This document shows, piece by piece, positions 47,095 through 56,460 of a stretch of 64,000 nucleotides of DNA (position 1 is its first letter; each line of letters opens with the position of its first letter). The notes under the pieces were generated by a model, which was not told the DNA's origin, searched no databases, and saw only the letters and a list, made by a program, of their open reading frames with translations. Location: contig RQSC01000027.1 in the NCBI GenBank assembly GCA_013416795.1, positions 333,911 to 397,910 of the forward strand, written 5' to 3'. Position numbers and translations under genes: made by a program. The stretch is from Prasinococcaceae sp. CCMP 1430. Taxonomy: Eukaryota; Plantae; Prasinodermophyta.

Positions 47095-48447
47095 GATTCG
47101 CGGCGCGGCGGCGCGGGGCCGAGGGGGGGGGGGTAGGCTGCCGCTGCTACGCCGGGCGGCGCTGCGCCGTGCGTCCCGGTCTGCGTACCGCGCCCCGAGC
47201 GCCGTGTGGCGCCCAGCAGCGCGCCGATCTCCTCCCACGGCACCGTACCCTACCCTCCCTGTGGGGCAGTGACGAGCCAAAAAAAAAAAAAGCGGCTCGC
47301 CGGCGGTGCAGCTCAGCAGGTCAGGATGCACCCACGGCCAGGCCAAAAAAAAAAAAAGTGTTCCGGAAACACTGCTCCGGTCCGCCGTCGGGCGCGCATT
47401 CGGAACATGGTAGTGCGTCTCGGCATGGTCGCTCGAGTCGACTCGGCTCGACGTGGGTGAATGGAACTCCAGTTCCGGCTGTTGCCTGCCGGCAGAGCCC
47501 AAAAACGAACACTGAGGTGCCGGGCTCCGCCCGGCGCGCGTGCCCGGCACACGGCGCGCACGTAGCGTTGCGCGGGCAGACCTCGTCGGGGACGGGCCGG
47601 GGGGGGGAGGGGGAGGAGGCCCGGGGGCGCGCGCGCCGCGCGCGCGCTGTGGCGCATCCGTTTTTTTATCCCCTTTTTTTAATCGCCCAAACAAAAAAAC
47701 TCGATGAGTATCCCGGTCAAAAATCCGAGGACCTCGCAAAAGCCGTGCCCGCAGGCACCCACCGCACCCGGCGGTACGCCCGCCTGGCGAGGGACGCGAC
47801 TTTTATGAACGCCCGCGTTCGTACGCAGGGAGACGCACAAAAGGATGGCCTCCAAAATGCATTGATTTTGATGGACGCAGAGTGTCGCCCAAAGCGCACA
47901 GTGCATCCGTCTTCAATCTCACCCACGGGAGACTTTTACACGCGTTTGGGAAAAGTACGTCAAAATGCATCGCCTCGCGCAGCTCCGAAAAGGCACGGCG
48001 CCGAGCACCCCAGGCGAAGGCCTGAGCGACACCGAAACTGTGTTCGATTAATAGGGTCTACATGTAATATTACAATGAATTACAAATGAGAAATAATGGA
48101 ATTTACCCTAAATAAGGCCTGCTGCGCATCGCGGGTGCCGGGCCCGCGTTCGAACGGTTCCCCGAGCAGCCGCGGCGGCGGGCGGCACACCGGCCGCGCG
48201 CCCCAGCCAGCCCCAGAGGGGTGGGTGAGGCGGAAGGCGGAGGCGGGGGTCCCTCCTCCCTCCCGCTTCGCCCGGCGGCGGCCGCTCGGGCGCGCGGGCG
48301 GCGCCGGCGCCGGCGCTGCCACGGCCGGCGCCGCGCCGCGCGAGGCCGCGCGCGGGCGGCAGGGACAGAGTTCCGCCTGGGCAGAGGTTCCAGCGAATTG
48401 GGGTGCACGCGCCTGTGCCCCCGCCCCCGCCGCCTTCCCCGCCAATC

Positions 48448-49077
48448 ATGCTCATGTCAGGCGCGCTCTATGGCGTCATGGTGGTAGCCGGCGCTGGCGG
48501 GGCTAAGGTGCTCGGCGTGCCCGTGCACGTGAGCGTGACCGCCGAGGCGCTCGCGCAGGGCGTCGTTTGGGCGGTCCCGATGGTGGCGCTGATGCTCGCG
48601 GTATCGTCCGAGCGAGCGCAGCGGATGTACAAGCCCCTGCGCGCGACGATAGACTTTTGTGTCACATCTATCGTCCCAACAATAGGCGGCGTGTCCGTGC
48701 GCGGCCTCGCATTCCTCTCGGCGTGTGCTGGCATCGGCGAGGAGATGTTCTTCCGAGGGCTCGGGCAGGGCGCGCTCGCTGCAGCACTCGCAGGTGCTGC
48801 GTGGTGCGCGCACCCGCAGGCGACGGCGATTGCTGTCGTTTCCCTCATCTTCGGTTTGCTTCACGCCGCGACGCCCGCGTACGGTGTGCTCGCAACACTC
48901 GCCGGTGCTTACCTGGGCTTCCAGTACGTCTGGTGTGACAATCTGCTCGCGCCGGTGCTCAGCCACGCGCTCTACGACTTTGCCGCCTTCCTCAAGCTTC
49001 GAGACAACGCTGCGCGCAGGTTGGAGACAGCAGGAGGGATCGCCGGCGACACGGCGGTCCCATCACGTGCGGATTGA
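48448..49077 (+). CDS. CPBP (CAAX protease/Abi) family intramembrane metalloprotease; real start may be upstream (targeting peptide)
   Basis: GIGEEMFFRG, IFGLLH, HALYD motifs; several TM helices. Confidence 0.85.
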   Translation: MLMSGALYGVMVVAGAGGAKVLGVPVHVSVTAEALAQGVVWAVPMVALMLAVSSERAQRMYKPLRATIDFCVTSIVPTIGGVSVRGLAFLSACAGIGEEMFFRGLGQGALAAALAGAAWCAHPQATAIAVVSLIFGLLHAATPAYGVLATLAGAYLGFQYVWCDNLLAPVLSHALYDFAAFLKLRDNAARRLETAGGIAGDTAVPSRAD

Positions 49078-49404
49078 GCTCCTTGCCGCACTAAGGCTGT
49101 AGCGTAGCCCGCGAAACCGTCTTGGACGTGTTGCTCGCCAGTCGCAGCACGCTAGCGTGTGCCCATGATCGGGACATCGAGCTCGCTCGCCGACTGGCGC
49201 GAGAGTCCGTGTTGTACAGTACTATAATTTGTATGCATCTTCACTCCTCCTCGCGAGGTCGCCGCCAATCGCGCCGCGCAGAGGTCTGGTGCGCGCGCGC
49301 GCGCGCACAAGGCTATCAGAACCACCCCTCATCCCCCACCCCCCCACAAAGAAAAACGTCTCTGAAACCAACCCGCTTGTGTGCGCACGGGCGCGCACAT
49401 CTCT

Positions 49405-52400
49405 TCAAGAGTCTGCAGCGTCTTCTGCATTCGGCGACCCAGCCTTGTCACTAGCCCCGCCCGCATCAGGGCCATCGTCACGTCTCTTTGATGATGACGT
49501 TGGCCACCCGCCCAGAATCGTACTCACGCGCTCGAGCGCAGCATCTTCTGCATTCAGCGACCCAGCCTTGTCACTAGCCCCGCCCGTGTCAGGGCCATCT
49601 TCACGTCTCTTTGACGACGACGTTGACCACCCGGCCAGCATCCCCAACTTCACGCGCGTGAGCGCGCTCCGGTAGCGAGCGCGAACCTCGTCGTTTGTGC
49701 CTGAAGTCTCTTCAGAACTCCGCGATGCAGCCTTGCTCTCCTGCTCCGCGACGCGGCGCATCTCCCCTGACTCGCCCTCGTCATCAAGCAGCGAGTCCAG
49801 GTTCTCGCAGCAAGGGGCGTATTCAATTGTCCGGCTGTCCTGGCGGTAGTATAACCCAAGCACAGCGAAGAGGCGCCACATTGCCGCCTGCAGGATCAAG
49901 ATTAGTATTGCCATGTGCTGGTTATTCAGCGCCCACGTGAACGGCGGCTCTTTGCTGGCCAGCGCCCCTATGGCGATGTCGCCATCCAGCAGGCCGCATG
50001 TTGTAGCGAAGACGGTGCCGTCCGAGTCACCGTCAGCGCATTCGAAGGTCTCCCCGGTGAAAAGATTGCCGAGCGCGAGGTAGCGACTGTACGACATGGG
50101 CGTCACCAGGCCGATCCAACGGTACGCCACGTGCAGGTCTTTCCACGGCAGGACGGCGCCTGAAACCACCGCGCTCGACAGGGCGATCAGCGCTGACAGC
50201 ATGGACTTGGGCGTAGAGTCGTTTGCTAAGCACGCGATGGTCACGATCGCCCCAGCCATCACGGCATCCAGCAGGACTGCGCTGAGAAGGAGCACAGGCG
50301 CGCTCCGCATTGGCAGATCCAGCATCCCAATGAGCGTGAACGCAGCGATGCCGATGCCCAGCCAAGCGCGCGTGGTCTGCGCCACCATGAGGCTAACCAT
50401 GAACTGTACGGCCGACTCGCCGCCGTCGCGCTGCGAAGCCTTGTGAATAGTCGCGTACTGATACGTTGTCTCCATCAGCACGACCTTGCTCAGCGCAACC
50501 GCGGTGAGGTAAAAGGTCACGCCGACGTACTTGCGCACGTAGCCTTGCGCGTCGCGGCCCGGCATGTAGTAGGTGAGACCTCCGAACAAGGCGCCCACCA
50601 CAATCACGAATGCAATAGACGCGAGGTTCTGCGTGCAAGGCGTAAGGGGTGCAGGCGCTGTGTCAGTCTTGCTGTCGCCCCCAAAGTGATCAAACTCCTC
50701 CCGTGGCACGCCAAGCGCAGTTTTTGTGCGGGGGCCGAAGCAGGCGGCAGCGGCGCGGCGGCCGTCGGACCTCCCGAGGCCTCTTGATATCAGTGCGGAA
50801 CTGGCGCCCGTGCAACGTCAGCGCGACCTTAATCCAGCGTCGCGTTGCGCTTTGCTTCAACCGGTCGGCCTCCTCGCTCCAGTCCTCCTCCTCGCCGATC
50901 ATGGCCGCGTTGGTGCGGTCGACGACCTGCATCGATGCGGCCCCAAATATTCCCTTTACAGACGATATCATCCTCAGGATGCGCCTGCCGCTCATCTCAG
51001 CCAGAATTTCGGACCCCAGGCTGCTCAGGCCGCTGGTGGTGCGATCGAGGCCGGCGACGCGGGTGCTGCCAGAGCGCGCGTACGCGACGGCGCGCTTCAC
51101 CAGCGGCAGCAGGGCCACGTTGGCGACATCTTGCGTGGTCGCATCCGGCTCCGTCGCCTGAGCCCCCTGCTTCTCAGCCATCTCAATCAGCGACTCGTCA
51201 GACGCTAGCTTCTTCAGCGCGCCGTCCAGCACCACAAGCGCTGTCCGCCGCTGCCGGGACGCGTTCTTCTCGACGACTTTGTCTACAGTGTCGTCGTCCA
51301 TACTTATGAGGTCCAACATGACGTCCGCTGGGTTGCCTAAGACGGGCTCGGGCATGAACGCGCGCGCGAGGCCATTGCGGCCCATGAAGTAGTCGACAGC
51401 GTCGGTGACCGGACCAGCGAAGACCACGCGACCCTTGCTCATGAGCACTAGGTCGTCAAAGAACCGGAAGACTTCGTCCCTTGGCTGATGGATCGTGAGC
51501 GCGATGGCTCGACCCTGTGTCGTGATGTCACGCAGGCTCTGAACGAGCTCCAGCGTGCCGTACGAATCCAGACCTGAGGTTGGCTCGTCGCCGAAGATCC
51601 ACAGCGGGTCGCGCAGAAGCTGCTTGCCGACGCTGAGTCGGCGCCGCTGGCCGCCGCTCAGGCCGCCGCCGCCGCCGACCGTGCCGATCTGCGTGTCGGC
51701 CTTGTCGCCATCGAGCTTCACCGCGCGCAGCACGTGGCGCACTCGCCGCACGGTAGCCTTCGTGCCCAGGTGCGGCAGCCGCACGCCCACCTCGTAGAGC
51801 AGCGCCTCGCGCGGCGTGAGCGTCGGGTACGCCTCGAACTCGAATTGCGGCACGTAGCCGCAGCTTTCGTTGAGCCCCGCGTCGGTGGCGTCGCTAGCCT
51901 GCAAGTGATTGCGCAGCAGCAGCCCTTCGACGCGCCCGCTGAGGCGCCGCCCGACCATCAGCTCAAGGAGCGTCGTCTTGCCACAGCCGCTGGAGCCCAT
52001 GACGGCCGTCAGCCGAGCGCCCGCGAAGCGCAGTGACACGTTGCGTAGCAGCGGGAGCCATTCGCCCGTGTTCCAGTTGGTCACGCTGTACGACACGCAG
52101 CACAGCTCGATGGGGAAGGGCACTTCTGTGGCCAGCAAGCTCCCCTTCTTCCTAATCTTCGGCGGCGGGGGCGAGGCGCCCTCGCTGCTCGCCGATGCGA
52201 CAGGGTTTCTCGTCGATGACGCGTCCGCTGTCTTGCGCGTCTGCTTGCCCGTCAAACTGGCCCAGCGCTTGGTGCGCACGAAGCTGAGCGCCATCGAGAA
52301 GATGTCGCTCACAAACAGGCCCATCAGCAGTAGCGCCAGCAGCATCACCGCGAGGGCCTTTCCGAGGCTGTCAGGTGGGCCCAGGTCGAGCGGCGGCAGA

Positions 52401-54100
52401 TCGGCGGGCAGCAGTCGGAAGGCAGCCTCGCAGGTCGGGTTGCAGTTGATTCCGGTGCAGGTGTCGGCGATTAGGCGCATGCCCTGCGGGGTGGTGACGC
52501 CGGGCTGGTGCGACCCCCGTTCCAGCAGCTCAGCGGCGTCGGTCTGCACCCACGCACCGAGGAGCTCAAGCACGCTCCGGTTGTGAACGCGCAGGCCCTC
52601 GAGCGCGCGCAGAGGGTCCTCCATCGCCCAGGGGAAGTCAACGCCGGCAAGCTCGTAGTCCATGAAGCTCCAATCGGGCATCCCGGTCGACTCGAAGTAC
52701 GGGATAGAGCGCACCAGCCAGCGCTCATCGTGGTACGACGCACCGTGGAAGAGGCACGCGGGCACCACCGCTGTGTGGCGCGCGGTGCGCACGTCGTAAG
52801 AGGTCGCCTCCACAGAGGCGCGCGAGAGAGCGCCAAACTCCTCCATCCACCGATACAACATGAGGTTGTCGAGCAGCGTCGTGTCGGCCGCGTCACGCTC
52901 GGGCAGCAGACCCACGGCCGGGATGAAGACGTACATGTCGTACGCCGGCTGGAGCAGCCATGTGGGCGCCTGGATGTGCGGCAGAGTGCGCCTCACGGGC
53001 GCGCACCACGCCGCCACCTCGGCGGCGACAAGCTGCGCGTCGGCAGCTCCGTAGTCAGCGACGTCATCTATGCCCAGCATCCGCCGAGCCTCTTCCGCGC
53101 ACGCACTTGGCGCCTGCACGCCCCACTCGAGCGCGTTGCGCACTGAGTTGGCTTGCTCGCGCGCGAGCCCGCCACCGCGGTAGTCCACAGCGGGGACGTT
53201 CGCGCCAGTCGACTCGTCTTCCTCGAGCGGAGGCGTGGGCGCCAGCCACGCAGAGTCGAGCGCCAGGCGCAGGTCCACCGCCGGGCCGAGCGCCTCACGC
53301 CACGCCTCGGCGTGGTGCGCCGCACCCACGCCGCCCGCGCTGACCCCCCAAAGTACCACCTGCGCAGCTGAACCCATGCCGTGGTGCTGCACCAGCTCCT
53401 CAAGCGCGGCCTCCATCACGTGCGCGCCGCAGTAGCCCGAGGTGGTGGGGGCGGGGTTGCCGTCGACGAAGCCGAGCGCCGCGTCGGTGGCCGCGCCCGT
53501 TGCGTTGCCGCAACGCCGGCCCAAGTGCATATCGGAAGTGCAGTATGGGATGTGAACGCGACGCCACGCTCCGCCGGCGAACGGGGAGCTGGCGTCGGAT
53601 GCGTCGCCGGTGGGCTGGCCAAGCAGCGGGCCGCCCACGTTCAGGCTCTCGGGCCAGTTGCCGCCGGCGGCGGCGCCCACTTTGTTGCCGTCGCCCTCCG
53701 CGGGGAGTCCTTGCATAAGGGGGTTGTAGCCGCCGCCCGGATCGTAACCTGGCCGGGCCCACCGATGGAGCCGTTCCTCGCAGCCCTCCGCGTCAAAGCA
53801 CGCTGAGCCGCCCTCGACATACACCACAAACGACAGAGGCGAAGCATCAGCGGCGGCGGCGGCGGCGCCAGCGGCAACCCGATCCGCGTCGGTGTAGATC
53901 GCTGCGGGCCGACCATCGTTGCACCTTGCGAGCGGATGCTGCTCTAGCGAGACACGCCGGAGCGCATGGCTTGCCCATGTCGGAGGTGCGGACGCATCCC
54001 ACGGGCCCGGCCCAGTGGTGCGGTGAGAGGAGACGAGCAGAGGCGCCCATGCAAGGAGGAGGACCGCTGCCGGCCACGGGGCCTGAACGGCCGGGCGCAT
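49405..54100 (-). CDS. Signal peptide + Notum/pectin-acetylesterase domain + TM + ABCG half-transporter (NBD-TMD); intron 50770-50629
   Basis: CNDGRPA, YVEGGSACFD, HIPYCTSDMHLG, GVSAGG, QPAYD, CLFHG; TM LGKALAVMLLALLLMGLFV; Walker A GSSGCGKT, LSGGQRRR, DEPTSGLD, TIHQP; ABC2 TMD after the intron. Confidence 0.88.
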
Positions 54101-55021
54101 GGCGCAACTGCGTGCTGGACACCAACCGCAGGGGCGAGGCGCGTGCCGCGCCCCTCGCCCGCGAGCACGCAGCGAGCCCCTCGCCCCCAACGCCGGCCCT
54201 GGCGCGCCGCGCGCGCGAGCGCCCTGTGGCAACCAACCCAAATGACGCGGCGCGGGCGCGCGGCGAGCGGGCGCAGCGGCGCGCGCGCGGCCCCATCGAG
54301 CACCAAATCCCCCTAAACACACACAACGCGCGCGCGCAGTCGCGCGCGCGCGCGCGCGCGGCCCCGTTTTTTTTTCGCGGCGGCTTTCGCGCGGCGGCGA
54401 TACCAATCCGCCCCGGCGAGAAACGCCGGCGGCGCGGATTGGTATCGAAAAGGGGGCGGGGCGGCCCGGCGCCGGAGCGGCAAAACAAAAAAACGGGAAG
54501 AATTTCGGCGCGGGCGGGAGAGAAACGAGGGATGAAACGCAGGGAAAGGAGCGGATCGGGATCGCGGTCGGCAGCGCGCACACGCAAACAAACGCTGTCT
54601 TTTTTGTGGGTGGTTGGGTGGGCGGTTGAGGCCGGCGTTGCGCGCCGTTCGCGCGAAAAAAAAAAATGGGGCGTGCCTACAGATATTCCCCAGCCAGTCG
54701 AGCCCCTCCTCCCACGTCCACCACCCTCAAAAAAAAAAAAAACCTCCGCTTCGACTTTCCTCTTTACGTAGGGTTTGGCGCGGCTCGCCGGGGCCGCGCG
54801 CGCGCCGGCGGTTGGGCGCGCTGCGTCGACCGCGACGCAATCGCGTTCCGTCCCGGCGGTTGGGCGCTTGCATTCGGATTTCGAGTCAAATCGCTGCGAA
54901 TCAACGGGACGTCCAACAAATCATCCGCCATGACCGTTGTTTTCGGTTCCCCAACGGCAGAAAGATCTCCTCCTCAGCCACAGATACGCTACGTCTCCCG
55001 CTGCGTGGATCATTCAAAAAG

Positions 55022-55327
55022 ATGGTTGTGCGTGAGATTGTGTATTGCTGGAAGCAGTTCCCGGTGCTGGACGGCCCGACATACCAGCTGGACGGCAAGA
55101 CCAAAATCGTCGACGCCACGCAGCTGGCGGCGAATGACCTGCGGAGCGGCCTCCTCACGGTCAGAACCATCGTCGACCAGCTCTTCCTGATCTTCGCACA
55201 CGCGATTCCGTTCGGCAAGACTGTGTGGCTGCTGTACTTCAGCAAGGCGTGCAAGGACGTCTCGGGCGTGCGCGTGTCGGTGCACAGCTGGATCGACTTG
55301 CAACCGAAAGCGAACGAACTCGTCTGA
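55022..55327 (+). CDS. Hypothetical 101-aa protein (may have an upstream exon)
   Basis: Strong G/C third-position bias on the + strand; MVVREIVYCWKQFPVLDGPTYQLDG...; no recognised family. Confidence 0.55.
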   Translation: MVVREIVYCWKQFPVLDGPTYQLDGKTKIVDATQLAANDLRSGLLTVRTIVDQLFLIFAHAIPFGKTVWLLYFSKACKDVSGVRVSVHSWIDLQPKANELV

Positions 55328-55427
55328 GATGCAAAATTTGTGACGAATCGACCCGCTTGTGTACGCGCGTGTGTACACACGCGTGTACGTGTAGACTTGC
55401 CTCGCGCCTTTCTCTGCTGAGCCTTCT

Positions 55428-56460
55428 TCAGAAGCGAATCTGCCTGAATGCCATCCGGCAGACCTCTCTCCAGAGATGCCAGACGACCGCGTGTATGCAC
55501 GATCGAATGCACGTCCTCTCGATGAGCTCCATGCGTGCTTTCTTTTTGTCGATTTTCTGCGTGGACAGCTTCTGGAGCACCGGATGTTGCTTGCCTGGAT
55601 GGTCGTCGTCGCGACCGATCAACTCGTCGCGCCTCATGAGCAAAAGCTATGCCGTGGGGCGCAGTCAGCCGGGGAAGAAATCGCCGCGCGCGTGAGGGGT
55701 TAGCGAATGCCTCCCAAGAGAGATTCACTTTGGGTGTGCAAGGCGTGGGGCAAGCGCGAACCCGGAGGGCGGCCTTTGATACCTTGGCTTCACGGAAGCT
55801 CAGACCGAGATCGTCTGCGTCGTCCTGGCCCAGCGCGACGAGGAGTGGGCCGTCGATGTTCTCGCGCGCGAATGCAGCGCGCACGTTCTGCCCACCTCCG
55901 CTGCGCGGGCCCAGGGTGCTCACCCACGCAAGTGCCTCCCTCTCCCCCCATCGCTGCATCGGGATTGCGTACCACTCAGCCTCGTCGTGCTCGGCGCTCG
56001 CGCAATCTTCGTGATCGTACGTTGGCGGGACGACAAGCTGCGGCGGCGCCGTTGCCACAGGGATGGCATGGAGCGGGACCTGGCTGATACTACCTCCTCC
56101 GTCACTGTGCGAGCTGTCGGCCGGATCACCAGCATCGCGGGTCTCATCTTGTTCGCGCCTGAGTGCGGCGAGCAGCTTCTTCGCCTGCACTCGCGAGAAG
56201 CCAATGTCGCGCAGGTCCGCAGCATCGAGCTCGCGCAACGTTGCGCCGTCAACAGCCTCCGAGACGAGGCGTTCGGCAGCAGGCTCCGCGTTGAGTGCGG
56301 CCCCGGCCGGCAGCACCTCAAGCACCCACGCGGCGACATCTGAGGGCGATGCGGCAGGCGCGGGCGGTGGCGGGGCGTTCGCCCTCCTCTGCGCCCCCTT
56401 CTTCTCCTGCTGCTTGCGCTTCCTGCGTTTCTTCTGCCGTGCGCCTGCCTCGCCGCCCAT
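55428..56460 (-). CDS. Tandem SAM-domain protein; intron 55782-55647; 3' end uncertain
   Basis: DVAAWV...EAVDGATLRELDAADLRDIG and WGEREALAWV...FARENIDGPLLVALGQDDADDLGL..REAK|LLLMRRDEL. Confidence 0.75.

Follow-up and report, generated by a model that had tools for sequence, protein, structure and literature searches.

The DNA analysed in this study is a stretch of 64,000 nucleotides from Prasinococcaceae sp. CCMP 1430 (GenBank assembly GCA_013416795.1, contig RQSC01000027.1, positions 333,911 to 397,910 of the forward strand), which is called the window below and is numbered from its first letter. It is GC-rich eukaryotic DNA. Its minus strand carries, from 54100 to 49405, a single gene with two coding exons and one intron, whose predicted product joins a serine esterase of the Notum/pectin acetylesterase (PAE) type to a half-size transporter of the ABCG family. 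The spliced product of 1517 aa is residue for residue the same as UniRef100_A0A7R9TDY6 (UniProt A0A7R9TDY6) of Prasinoderma coloniale, which belongs to the Prasinodermophyta, a deep branch of the green plants. The gene is laid out as follows.

49343..54219, minus strand: extent of the mRNA, from transcript contig L001, which aligns to the window (blastn) in two blocks of 100% identity with the intron missing
54219-54101, minus strand: 5′ untranslated region (UTR), from contig L001
50771..54100, minus strand: coding exon 1 (aa 1-1110), one open frame for the signal peptide, the esterase, an extra transmembrane (TM) helix called TM0, the nucleotide-binding domain (NBD), the linker between NBD and transmembrane domain (TMD), and the start of the TMD
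50629..50770, minus strand: intron of 142 nt with GT..AG ends, read from the sequence and absent from transcript L001
49405..50628, minus strand: coding exon 2 (aa 1111-1517 and stop), joined in frame, for the remainder of the TMD and the C-terminal tail
49404-49343, minus strand: 3′ UTR, from contig L001

In the open reading frame (ORF) scan the minus strand showed two open frames, 54583 to 50690 and 50709 to 49405, which removal of the intron joins in phase to give the 1517-aa product. The frame of exon 1 stays open upstream of the ATG at 54100 as far as 54583; the mRNA, however, has its 5′ end at 54219, and the codon at 54100 is the first ATG of the message. Contig L001 (4735 nt; JGI sample 3300016765) matches the window from 54219 to 50771 and from 50630 to 49343. 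The fact that it lacks precisely the intron indicates that it was derived from spliced RNA. The 5′ UTR, the esterase, the ATPase, the membrane domain and the 3′ UTR all lie on this one molecule. The esterase and the ABCG transporter are encoded by one expressed gene and one mRNA.

These data bear out the reading of the locus in an initial annotation, made from the letters of the window and a list of its open frames. It had described a single frame with no intron between esterase and ATPase, and exon 1 runs uninterrupted from 54100 to 50771; the signal peptide, the complete hydrolase, the TM helix, the intact ATPase and, after one intron, the ABC2 membrane domain are all present, and the coordinates it gave for the motifs were correct to within a few bases. 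It had also named separate esterase and ABCG mRNAs among the observations that would speak against a fusion, and L001 is continuous over the joining region. A 1136-aa model of the same protein (P0001), found among EukProt, ENA and Logan ORF calls and widely copied, does not splice out the intron and ends at a stop codon at 50690. Since it takes 50690-50770 as coding, this model lacks the entire membrane domain; the correct model is the spliced one of 1517 aa. A (GC)n microsatellite and runs of A, at about 54330-54400 (minus strand), closely precede the 5′ end of the transcript.

The N-terminal part of the protein holds the following features.

54026..54100, minus strand: predicted signal peptide (aa 1-25), a hydrophobic N-terminus; relatives likewise begin with a hydrophobic leader
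52421..53932, minus strand: serine esterase ectodomain of predicted Notum/PAE fold (aa 57-560), from PF03283, the family profile, AlphaFold2, Foldseek and VIA
53330..53347, minus strand: nucleophile motif GVSAGG, with the predicted nucleophile Ser254 at codon 53339-53341, aligned to GSSAGG of NOTUM
52937..52939, minus strand: predicted catalytic Asp388 (QPAYD), in the consensus column opposite WLFDEAQ of NOTUM
52745..52747, minus strand: predicted catalytic His452 (CLFHG), in the consensus column opposite ACLSHE of NOTUM
52430..52465, minus strand: C-terminal cysteine motif DTCTGINCNPTC (aa 546-557), closing the ectodomain right before the membrane and also found in NOTUM

The initial annotation had proposed a search with PF03283, PF00005 and PF01061, and all three scored above their gathering cut-offs. 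For the ectodomain, which contains 12 Cys and two N-glycosylation sequons, the PF03283 match (E 3.1e-16, 59.8 bits against a cut-off of 26.6) covered only model positions 97-191. Two other results nevertheless show the domain to be complete, namely a full-length profile match and the alignment of its structural model with Notum. The profile, headed by this ectodomain, was made from an alignment of 95 PAE domains collected by an exhaustive HMMER search. The match to human NOTUM (E 3.5e-100) extended across the crystallised domain in full, with NOTUM DSCPWPHCNPSC opposite the cysteine motif at the C-terminal end of the profile. Ser254, Asp388 and His452 each stand in a column that is at least 90% conserved among the 95 domains. 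The AlphaFold2 model of the ectodomain (predicted local distance difference test [pLDDT] 74, predicted template modelling score [pTM] 0.84, with the low-confidence parts being insertions) strongly resembled only one known structure, that of NOTUM (Foldseek E 6e-18, target TM-score ~0.8). VIA-align superposed it on Notum with Z scores of 36.1 and 34.3 and a root-mean-square deviation of 2.5-2.7 Å over 334-341 residues; the top VIA match was Drosophila Notum (Z 36), whereas generic alpha/beta hydrolases reached only Z ~13. By its conserved columns and predicted structure, the ectodomain is a complete enzyme domain of Notum/PAE fold with the Ser-Asp-His triad intact.

Behind the esterase the chain is predicted to cross the membrane once before reaching the transporter, which is followed by a tail.

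52277..52357, minus strand: TM0 (aa 582-608), an extra membrane helix (hydropathy 2.5), a single long helix in the AlphaFold2 model
51386..52108, minus strand: ABCG nucleotide-binding domain (aa 665-905), from PF00005, TIGR00955, PDB sequence matches and motifs
51974-51997, minus strand: Walker A motif, GSSGCGKT
51845-51859, minus strand: Q-loop, by motif
51647-51661, minus strand: LSGGQ signature motif
51566-51589, minus strand: Walker B/D-loop motif, DEPTSGLD
51482-51493, minus strand: H-loop motif, IHQP
50849..51385, minus strand: NBD-TMD linker (aa 906-1084), helical, with AlphaFold2 pLDDT below 50 in parts
49834..50848, minus strand: ABCG transmembrane domain (aa 1085-1375), six TM helices and a third extracellular loop (EL3) with two conserved Cys; the intron lies inside it
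49408..49833, minus strand: predicted cytosolic C-terminal tail (aa 1376-1517), from the sequence

A signal peptide at one end of the esterase and TM0 at the other imply that the esterase faces the cell exterior or a lumen and the NBD the cytosol, so that the protein is, by predicted topology, type-I-anchored with its esterase outside the membrane. The topology and fold predictions suggested in the initial annotation returned the expected layout and a Notum fold; the triad was placed by conserved alignment columns. Residues 609-664, between TM0 and the NBD, form a linker that is predicted to be disordered. In the tail, a self-match in blastn revealed two tandem copies of ~42 aa (~126 nt), at 49415-49539 and 49538-49665, that are 87% identical and rich in Ser, Lys, Asp and Gly; Tandem Repeats Finder reported nothing on the gene, and this repeat is visible solely as the blastn self-match.

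The transporter part matched PF00005 (E 1.6e-16), TIGR00955 (E 1.6e-59) and, for the membrane domain, PF01061 (E 9.2e-8, 32.3 bits against a cut-off of 26.9). Hydropathy supports the six helices of the TMD, and every ATPase motif is intact, with no sign of a degenerate ATPase. Sequence matches of the NBD-TMD part in the PDB were Cdr1/Pdr5, ABCG8, ABCG5 and ABCG2 at E ~1e-36 to 1e-38, and also ABCG25 and ABCG1. The AlphaFold model of this part (pLDDT 76, pTM 0.75) superposed on full-length ABCG2, ABCG5/G8, ABCG16, ABCG25 and ABCG1 over ~720 columns with a target TM-score of ~0.8 (Foldseek). These matches and the model point to a complete half-transporter with the NBD ahead of the TMD; family membership suggests that it would export as a dimer.

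The fusion is not confined to this alga. We searched the ectodomain alone with HMMER against 1.84 billion cluster representatives (50% identity) and obtained 224 matches, the best 150 of which were listed. The three best matches covered the whole ectodomain (E 1e-61 to 1e-73, 37-38% identity); all three carry an ABC ATPase, and in two of them the ABC2 membrane domain is visible as well. A PAE domain followed by an ABC NBD was present in at least 23 of the best 150 of the 224 matches, and four more of those listed are probably fragments of such fusions (PAE domain plus TM helix, or ending in a Walker A). Named carriers are Pycnococcus provasolii (XRB07016.1, 1865 aa, and XRA99266.1, 1502 aa), Pseudoscourfieldia marina (XRB22953.1), the calcareous sponge Sycon ciliatum (XP_065176110.1 and XP_065192370.1) and the homoscleromorph sponge Oscarella lobularis (XP_065833170.1 and XP_065837240.1). 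One member, P0035 from a picoeukaryote, is an intronless gene on Tara Oceans contigs, whereas other members are multi-exon genes on megabase eukaryotic contigs. On contig L087 (2216-6310), an ORF of 769 aa encodes a PAE domain and an NBD, and 22 nt beyond it begins another ORF, of 587 aa and with no Pfam match, which is probably the remainder of the transporter, split off by a short intron or a frameshift.

All of the 11 members examined have the same order, that is, a hydrophobic leader, the PAE domain, TM0 directly after it, a linker and a Walker A. Among full-length relatives the nearest is P0017, with 37% identity in the ectodomain and 29% across the ABCG part. Residues invariant in all eight full-length fusions include the catalytic Asp, the D/C/C/N/C motif ahead of TM0 and the two EL3 Cys, and the triad is intact in six of these fusions (the window protein, both Pycnococcus proteins, both Sycon proteins and Oscarella P0305). 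In the Tara Oceans protein P0035 (loci L002-L004) the nucleophile motif reads GSEAGG, with Ser changed to Glu, and the His is changed to Ala; in the Oscarella paralogue P0314 the His is changed to Asn. Going by these substitutions, the ectodomains of P0035 and P0314 are likely to be pseudo-esterases.

Other searches added little. Word-based homologue searches, with the ectodomain and with an alignment of the eight fusions, returned only the query itself or irrelevant ABC proteins from GC-rich bacteria, as Ala/Gly low complexity swamped the prefilter, and are uninformative on distribution. A homologue search with the ABCG region returned, owing to its length window, mostly full-size PDR-type proteins and gave no placement among half-size ABCGs. 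In a scan of metagenomes with NBD patterns, the matches listed were all distant ABC proteins that lack a PAE domain; they were reused as extra outgroups.

The database names of the protein and its relatives are automatic ('ABC transporter domain-containing protein', 'pectin acetylesterase'), and full-text literature searches, whose coverage excludes most subscription journals, so that absence is not proof, found no description of a PAE-ABCG architecture; one aimed at the N-terminal extensions of ABCG24/28-type proteins likewise produced nothing of use. PAE-ABCG is a conserved, undescribed family in early-branching green algae and sponges. The initial annotation, which knew of no esterase at this position in a transporter, agrees with the published record as far as we searched it. 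Its suggestion of an undescribed system holds as far as these searches go, but not in the sense of a one-off, since the architecture is shared by Pycnococcus, Pseudoscourfieldia, Sycon, Oscarella and many other eukaryotic contigs.

Each half of the protein resembles well-known relatives. With NOTUM, which is a palmitoleoyl-protein carboxylesterase, and the plant pectin acetylesterases (PF03283) the ectodomain shares the fold, the Ser-Asp-His columns, the GxSAGG motif, the N-terminal CNDG and EGG..C motifs and the C-terminal DxC..CNPxC motif. Those enzymes, however, are secreted and stand alone, whereas here the domain is the ectodomain of a transporter and contains long insertions of low model confidence. 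The direct similarity to NOTUM is marginal (phmmer E 0.05), and more Notum-like proteins, for example P0083 (E 6e-44), lie in the other half of the PAE tree, which rules out a NOTUM orthologue, that is, a Wnt deacylase. To our knowledge, green algae have no Wnt. With the ABCG half-transporters (ABCG2, ABCG5/G8, ABCG1 and plant ABCG25/16) the second part shares the NBD-then-TMD order, the ATPase motifs, the six TM helices and the Cys pair of EL3, but the window protein differs from them by the added signal peptide, the 500-aa extracellular enzyme domain, a seventh TM helix before the NBD, a long NBD-TMD linker (~180 aa) and a 140-aa C-terminal tail with a tandem repeat.

Half-size ABCGs with an extra N-terminal domain are already known from the yeast ADP1 clade, where this domain is most commonly an EGF domain (PMC9426558). 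The window protein resembles the ADP1-type proteins in being a half-size ABCG with an additional domain ahead of the NBD; that domain, unlike EGF repeats, is an alpha/beta-hydrolase with a catalytic triad, and a Pfam scan gave no EGF domain match in the window protein. What is new is thus an ABCG with an enzyme as its ectodomain, not an ABCG with an extra N-terminal ectodomain as such. A hydrolase physically coupled to an ABC machine is also found in bacteria, in the peptidase-containing ABC exporters (PCATs), in which a C39 peptidase is fused to an ABC exporter, and in FtsEX, which controls cell-wall hydrolases. In such couplings the hydrolase either processes the cargo or is regulated by the ABC machine. 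The likeness is one of analogy only, as the hydrolases of neither system are homologous to this esterase; the PCAT hydrolase is cytosolic and acts before export, and FtsEX, of another fold, acts as a regulator of proteins that are not part of it.

Phylogenetic analysis favours a single origin of the fusion. The eight fusion NBDs formed one clade (SH-aLRT, an approximate likelihood ratio test, 95-96) against 74-84 other ABCG/ABC NBDs, and this clade divides into a sponge subclade and a green-algal subclade. The tree of PAE domains has all fusion ectodomains in one half and none among the remaining 52 domains; constraining the fusion ectodomains, with a few nested stand-alone proteins, to one clade cost 2 log-likelihood units and was not rejected (approximately unbiased test, p 0.44). 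The single NBD clade together with the unrejected ectodomain clade is the basis on which these sequences favour one fusion event. Stand-alone PAE proteins of 403-465 aa (P0051, P0052, P0053, P0061, P0069, P0095, P0150 and P0158), several of which have a hydrophobic N-terminal leader, form a clade nested among the sponge-type fusion ectodomains, and this placement suggests a secondary loss of the transporter part. We also considered the sponge fusion ectodomains as the source of animal NOTUM and dropped the idea, as the nested P0069 group is only weakly Notum-like (8e-18) and proteins more like Notum lie elsewhere in the tree.

What such a protein might do can be proposed from its relatives. 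ABCG half-transporters function as dimers, and ABCGs transport lipids and further hydrophobic compounds outward, which makes export coupled to extracellular de-esterification the most likely function. If the protein works as a dimer like other half-transporters, two esterases would be tethered beside the outer mouth of the translocation path. The cargo would carry an ester (through acylation or acetylation) and probably be lipid-like, and ATP hydrolysis would drive it to the outer leaflet or an exit cavity; the Notum-like pocket would take it up, and Ser254, Asp388 and His452 would cleave the ester, which may make release irreversible or yield a product that is active only outside the cell. 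The Cys motif before TM0, invariant in the eight fusions, keeps the ectodomain near the membrane. We regard the architecture and the family membership as nearly certain, and we infer the coupled export-deacylation mechanism with somewhat less than even confidence; the explanation as a whole (architecture, family, and export coupled to extracellular de-esterification) has in our estimate a probability of about 0.5.

This proposal reverses the flow in the initial annotation, which had read the protein as deacylating outside and then transporting across: the ABCGs that it resembles are exporters or floppases, and export followed by deacylation or hand-over outside fits better. A substrate such as wall polysaccharide, one of those named there, or pectin is weakened by the presence and expansion of the family in sponges; the many copies in sponges make a pectin-specific role unlikely.

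Several points weigh against coupled export and deacylation or against the phylogenetic frame around it. The catalytic residues have been lost in P0035 and P0314 while the domain was retained, which indicates that hydrolysis is not essential in every member. The ectodomain sequence is too distant from NOTUM for acyl-chain specificity to be transferred. The AlphaFold2 models cover the ectodomain and the ABCG part separately, and the proximity of pocket and exit is an assumption. The trees are quick ones with long branches, and the NBD sampling is without canonical half-size ABCGs and ADP1. The ectodomain was first annotated as deacylating, but in view of the two relatives without catalytic residues catalysis may not be the sole role of the domain.

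The two likely pseudo-esterases point to another explanation, in which the ectodomain is mainly a lipid-binding or acceptor module that receives lipid extruded by the ABCG, comparable to the large extracellular domains of ABCA proteins, with catalysis being secondary or lineage-specific. P0035, without Ser and His, and P0314, without His, have nevertheless kept the domain, the Cys motif and the transporter; moreover, the fold is specifically that of Notum, which has a lipid-binding pocket. Given, however, that the triad is perfect in the window protein, in both Pycnococcus and both Sycon proteins and in Oscarella P0305, and that its columns are at least 90% conserved across the family, we consider this explanation rather unlikely.

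It is also conceivable that nothing crosses the membrane and that the ABC module is an ATP-driven switch, in the manner of FtsEX, for an esterase tethered outside and acting on a polymer or surface protein. TM0 would covalently tether the enzyme directly beside the TMD, the ATPase motifs are intact, and enzymes of the PAE family commonly act on polymers or proteins. This reading is improbable in view of the full ABCG transporter fold with its conserved EL3 cysteines and of the predicted disorder of the TM0-NBD linker, which would make it a poor transmitter of force; proteins of the MacB/FtsX fold are known to work by mechanotransmission, but ABCGs are not. Just as improbable in our view is that the two activities are linked by pathway or location only, the ABCG being an anchor or trafficking device or the two halves performing separate steps, such as remodelling of a surface coat, without hand-over. 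The architecture has been kept across green algae and sponges in many paralogues, and TM0 follows close behind the invariant Cys motif in the window protein, which suggests a constrained geometry; on the other hand, domain fusions often signal a shared pathway rather than channelling, and the ectodomains of ADP1-type ABCGs, EGF for instance, are unrelated (PMC9426558).

Inward flow, with the esterase deacylating an external substrate (e.g., acetylated wall polysaccharide) and the ABCG importing the product, would be compatible with the order of the domains and the topology, but ABCG2, ABCG5/G8, ABCG1, ABCG25, ABCG16 and Pdr5, which the transporter part resembles, are exporters or floppases, and sponges, which have no pectin, carry many copies of the family; inward flow is therefore very improbable. 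Finally, a wrong merger of neighbouring esterase and ABCG genes, to which the disagreement among database models (the 1136-aa P0001 has no TMD, the intron being read as coding) might point, is effectively refuted by the spliced transcript L001, which spans everything, as well as opposed by the frame that stays open from the ATG to the end of the NBD, across esterase and TM0, and by the same fusion occurring intronless on Tara contigs and in RefSeq models of two sponges.

ABC exporters are usually seen as pumps that release their cargo unmodified. If the catalytic ectodomain fused to this pump functions as proposed for coupled export and de-esterification, eukaryotic export would be coupled to extracellular chemistry, with activation of pro-metabolites, lipid remodelling or irreversible release as possible consequences. 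The fusion would also give ABCG biology a built-in hint to the class of substrate (esters), and it widens the reach of the Notum/PAE family past secreted enzymes. A family common to marine green algae and sponges is an evolutionary puzzle. As a doubtful but possible extension, PAE-ABCG may represent an old class of eukaryotic 'enzyme-capped' ABC exporters that deliver an esterified lipid or metabolite into a tethered deacylase, with one origin and survival in green algae and, expanded, in sponges through deep ancestry with loss or transfer; if so, the free or active product would appear outside the cell only. The gene is compact and intron-poor, and the ectodomain should be expressible, which makes the idea directly testable.

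Two neighbours of the gene were also noted. On the plus strand, an ORF at window positions 48403-49077 encodes an Rce1-like/CPBP domain of the CAAX protease family (PF02517, 2.7e-16); it runs convergently towards the ABCG gene, with ~270 nt between its end and the 3′ end of that gene. Upstream of the gene, on the minus strand, lies a long ORF at 54901-56460 with only a weak, sub-threshold match to a SAM domain (E 0.0019), which is probably part of a separate multi-exon gene.

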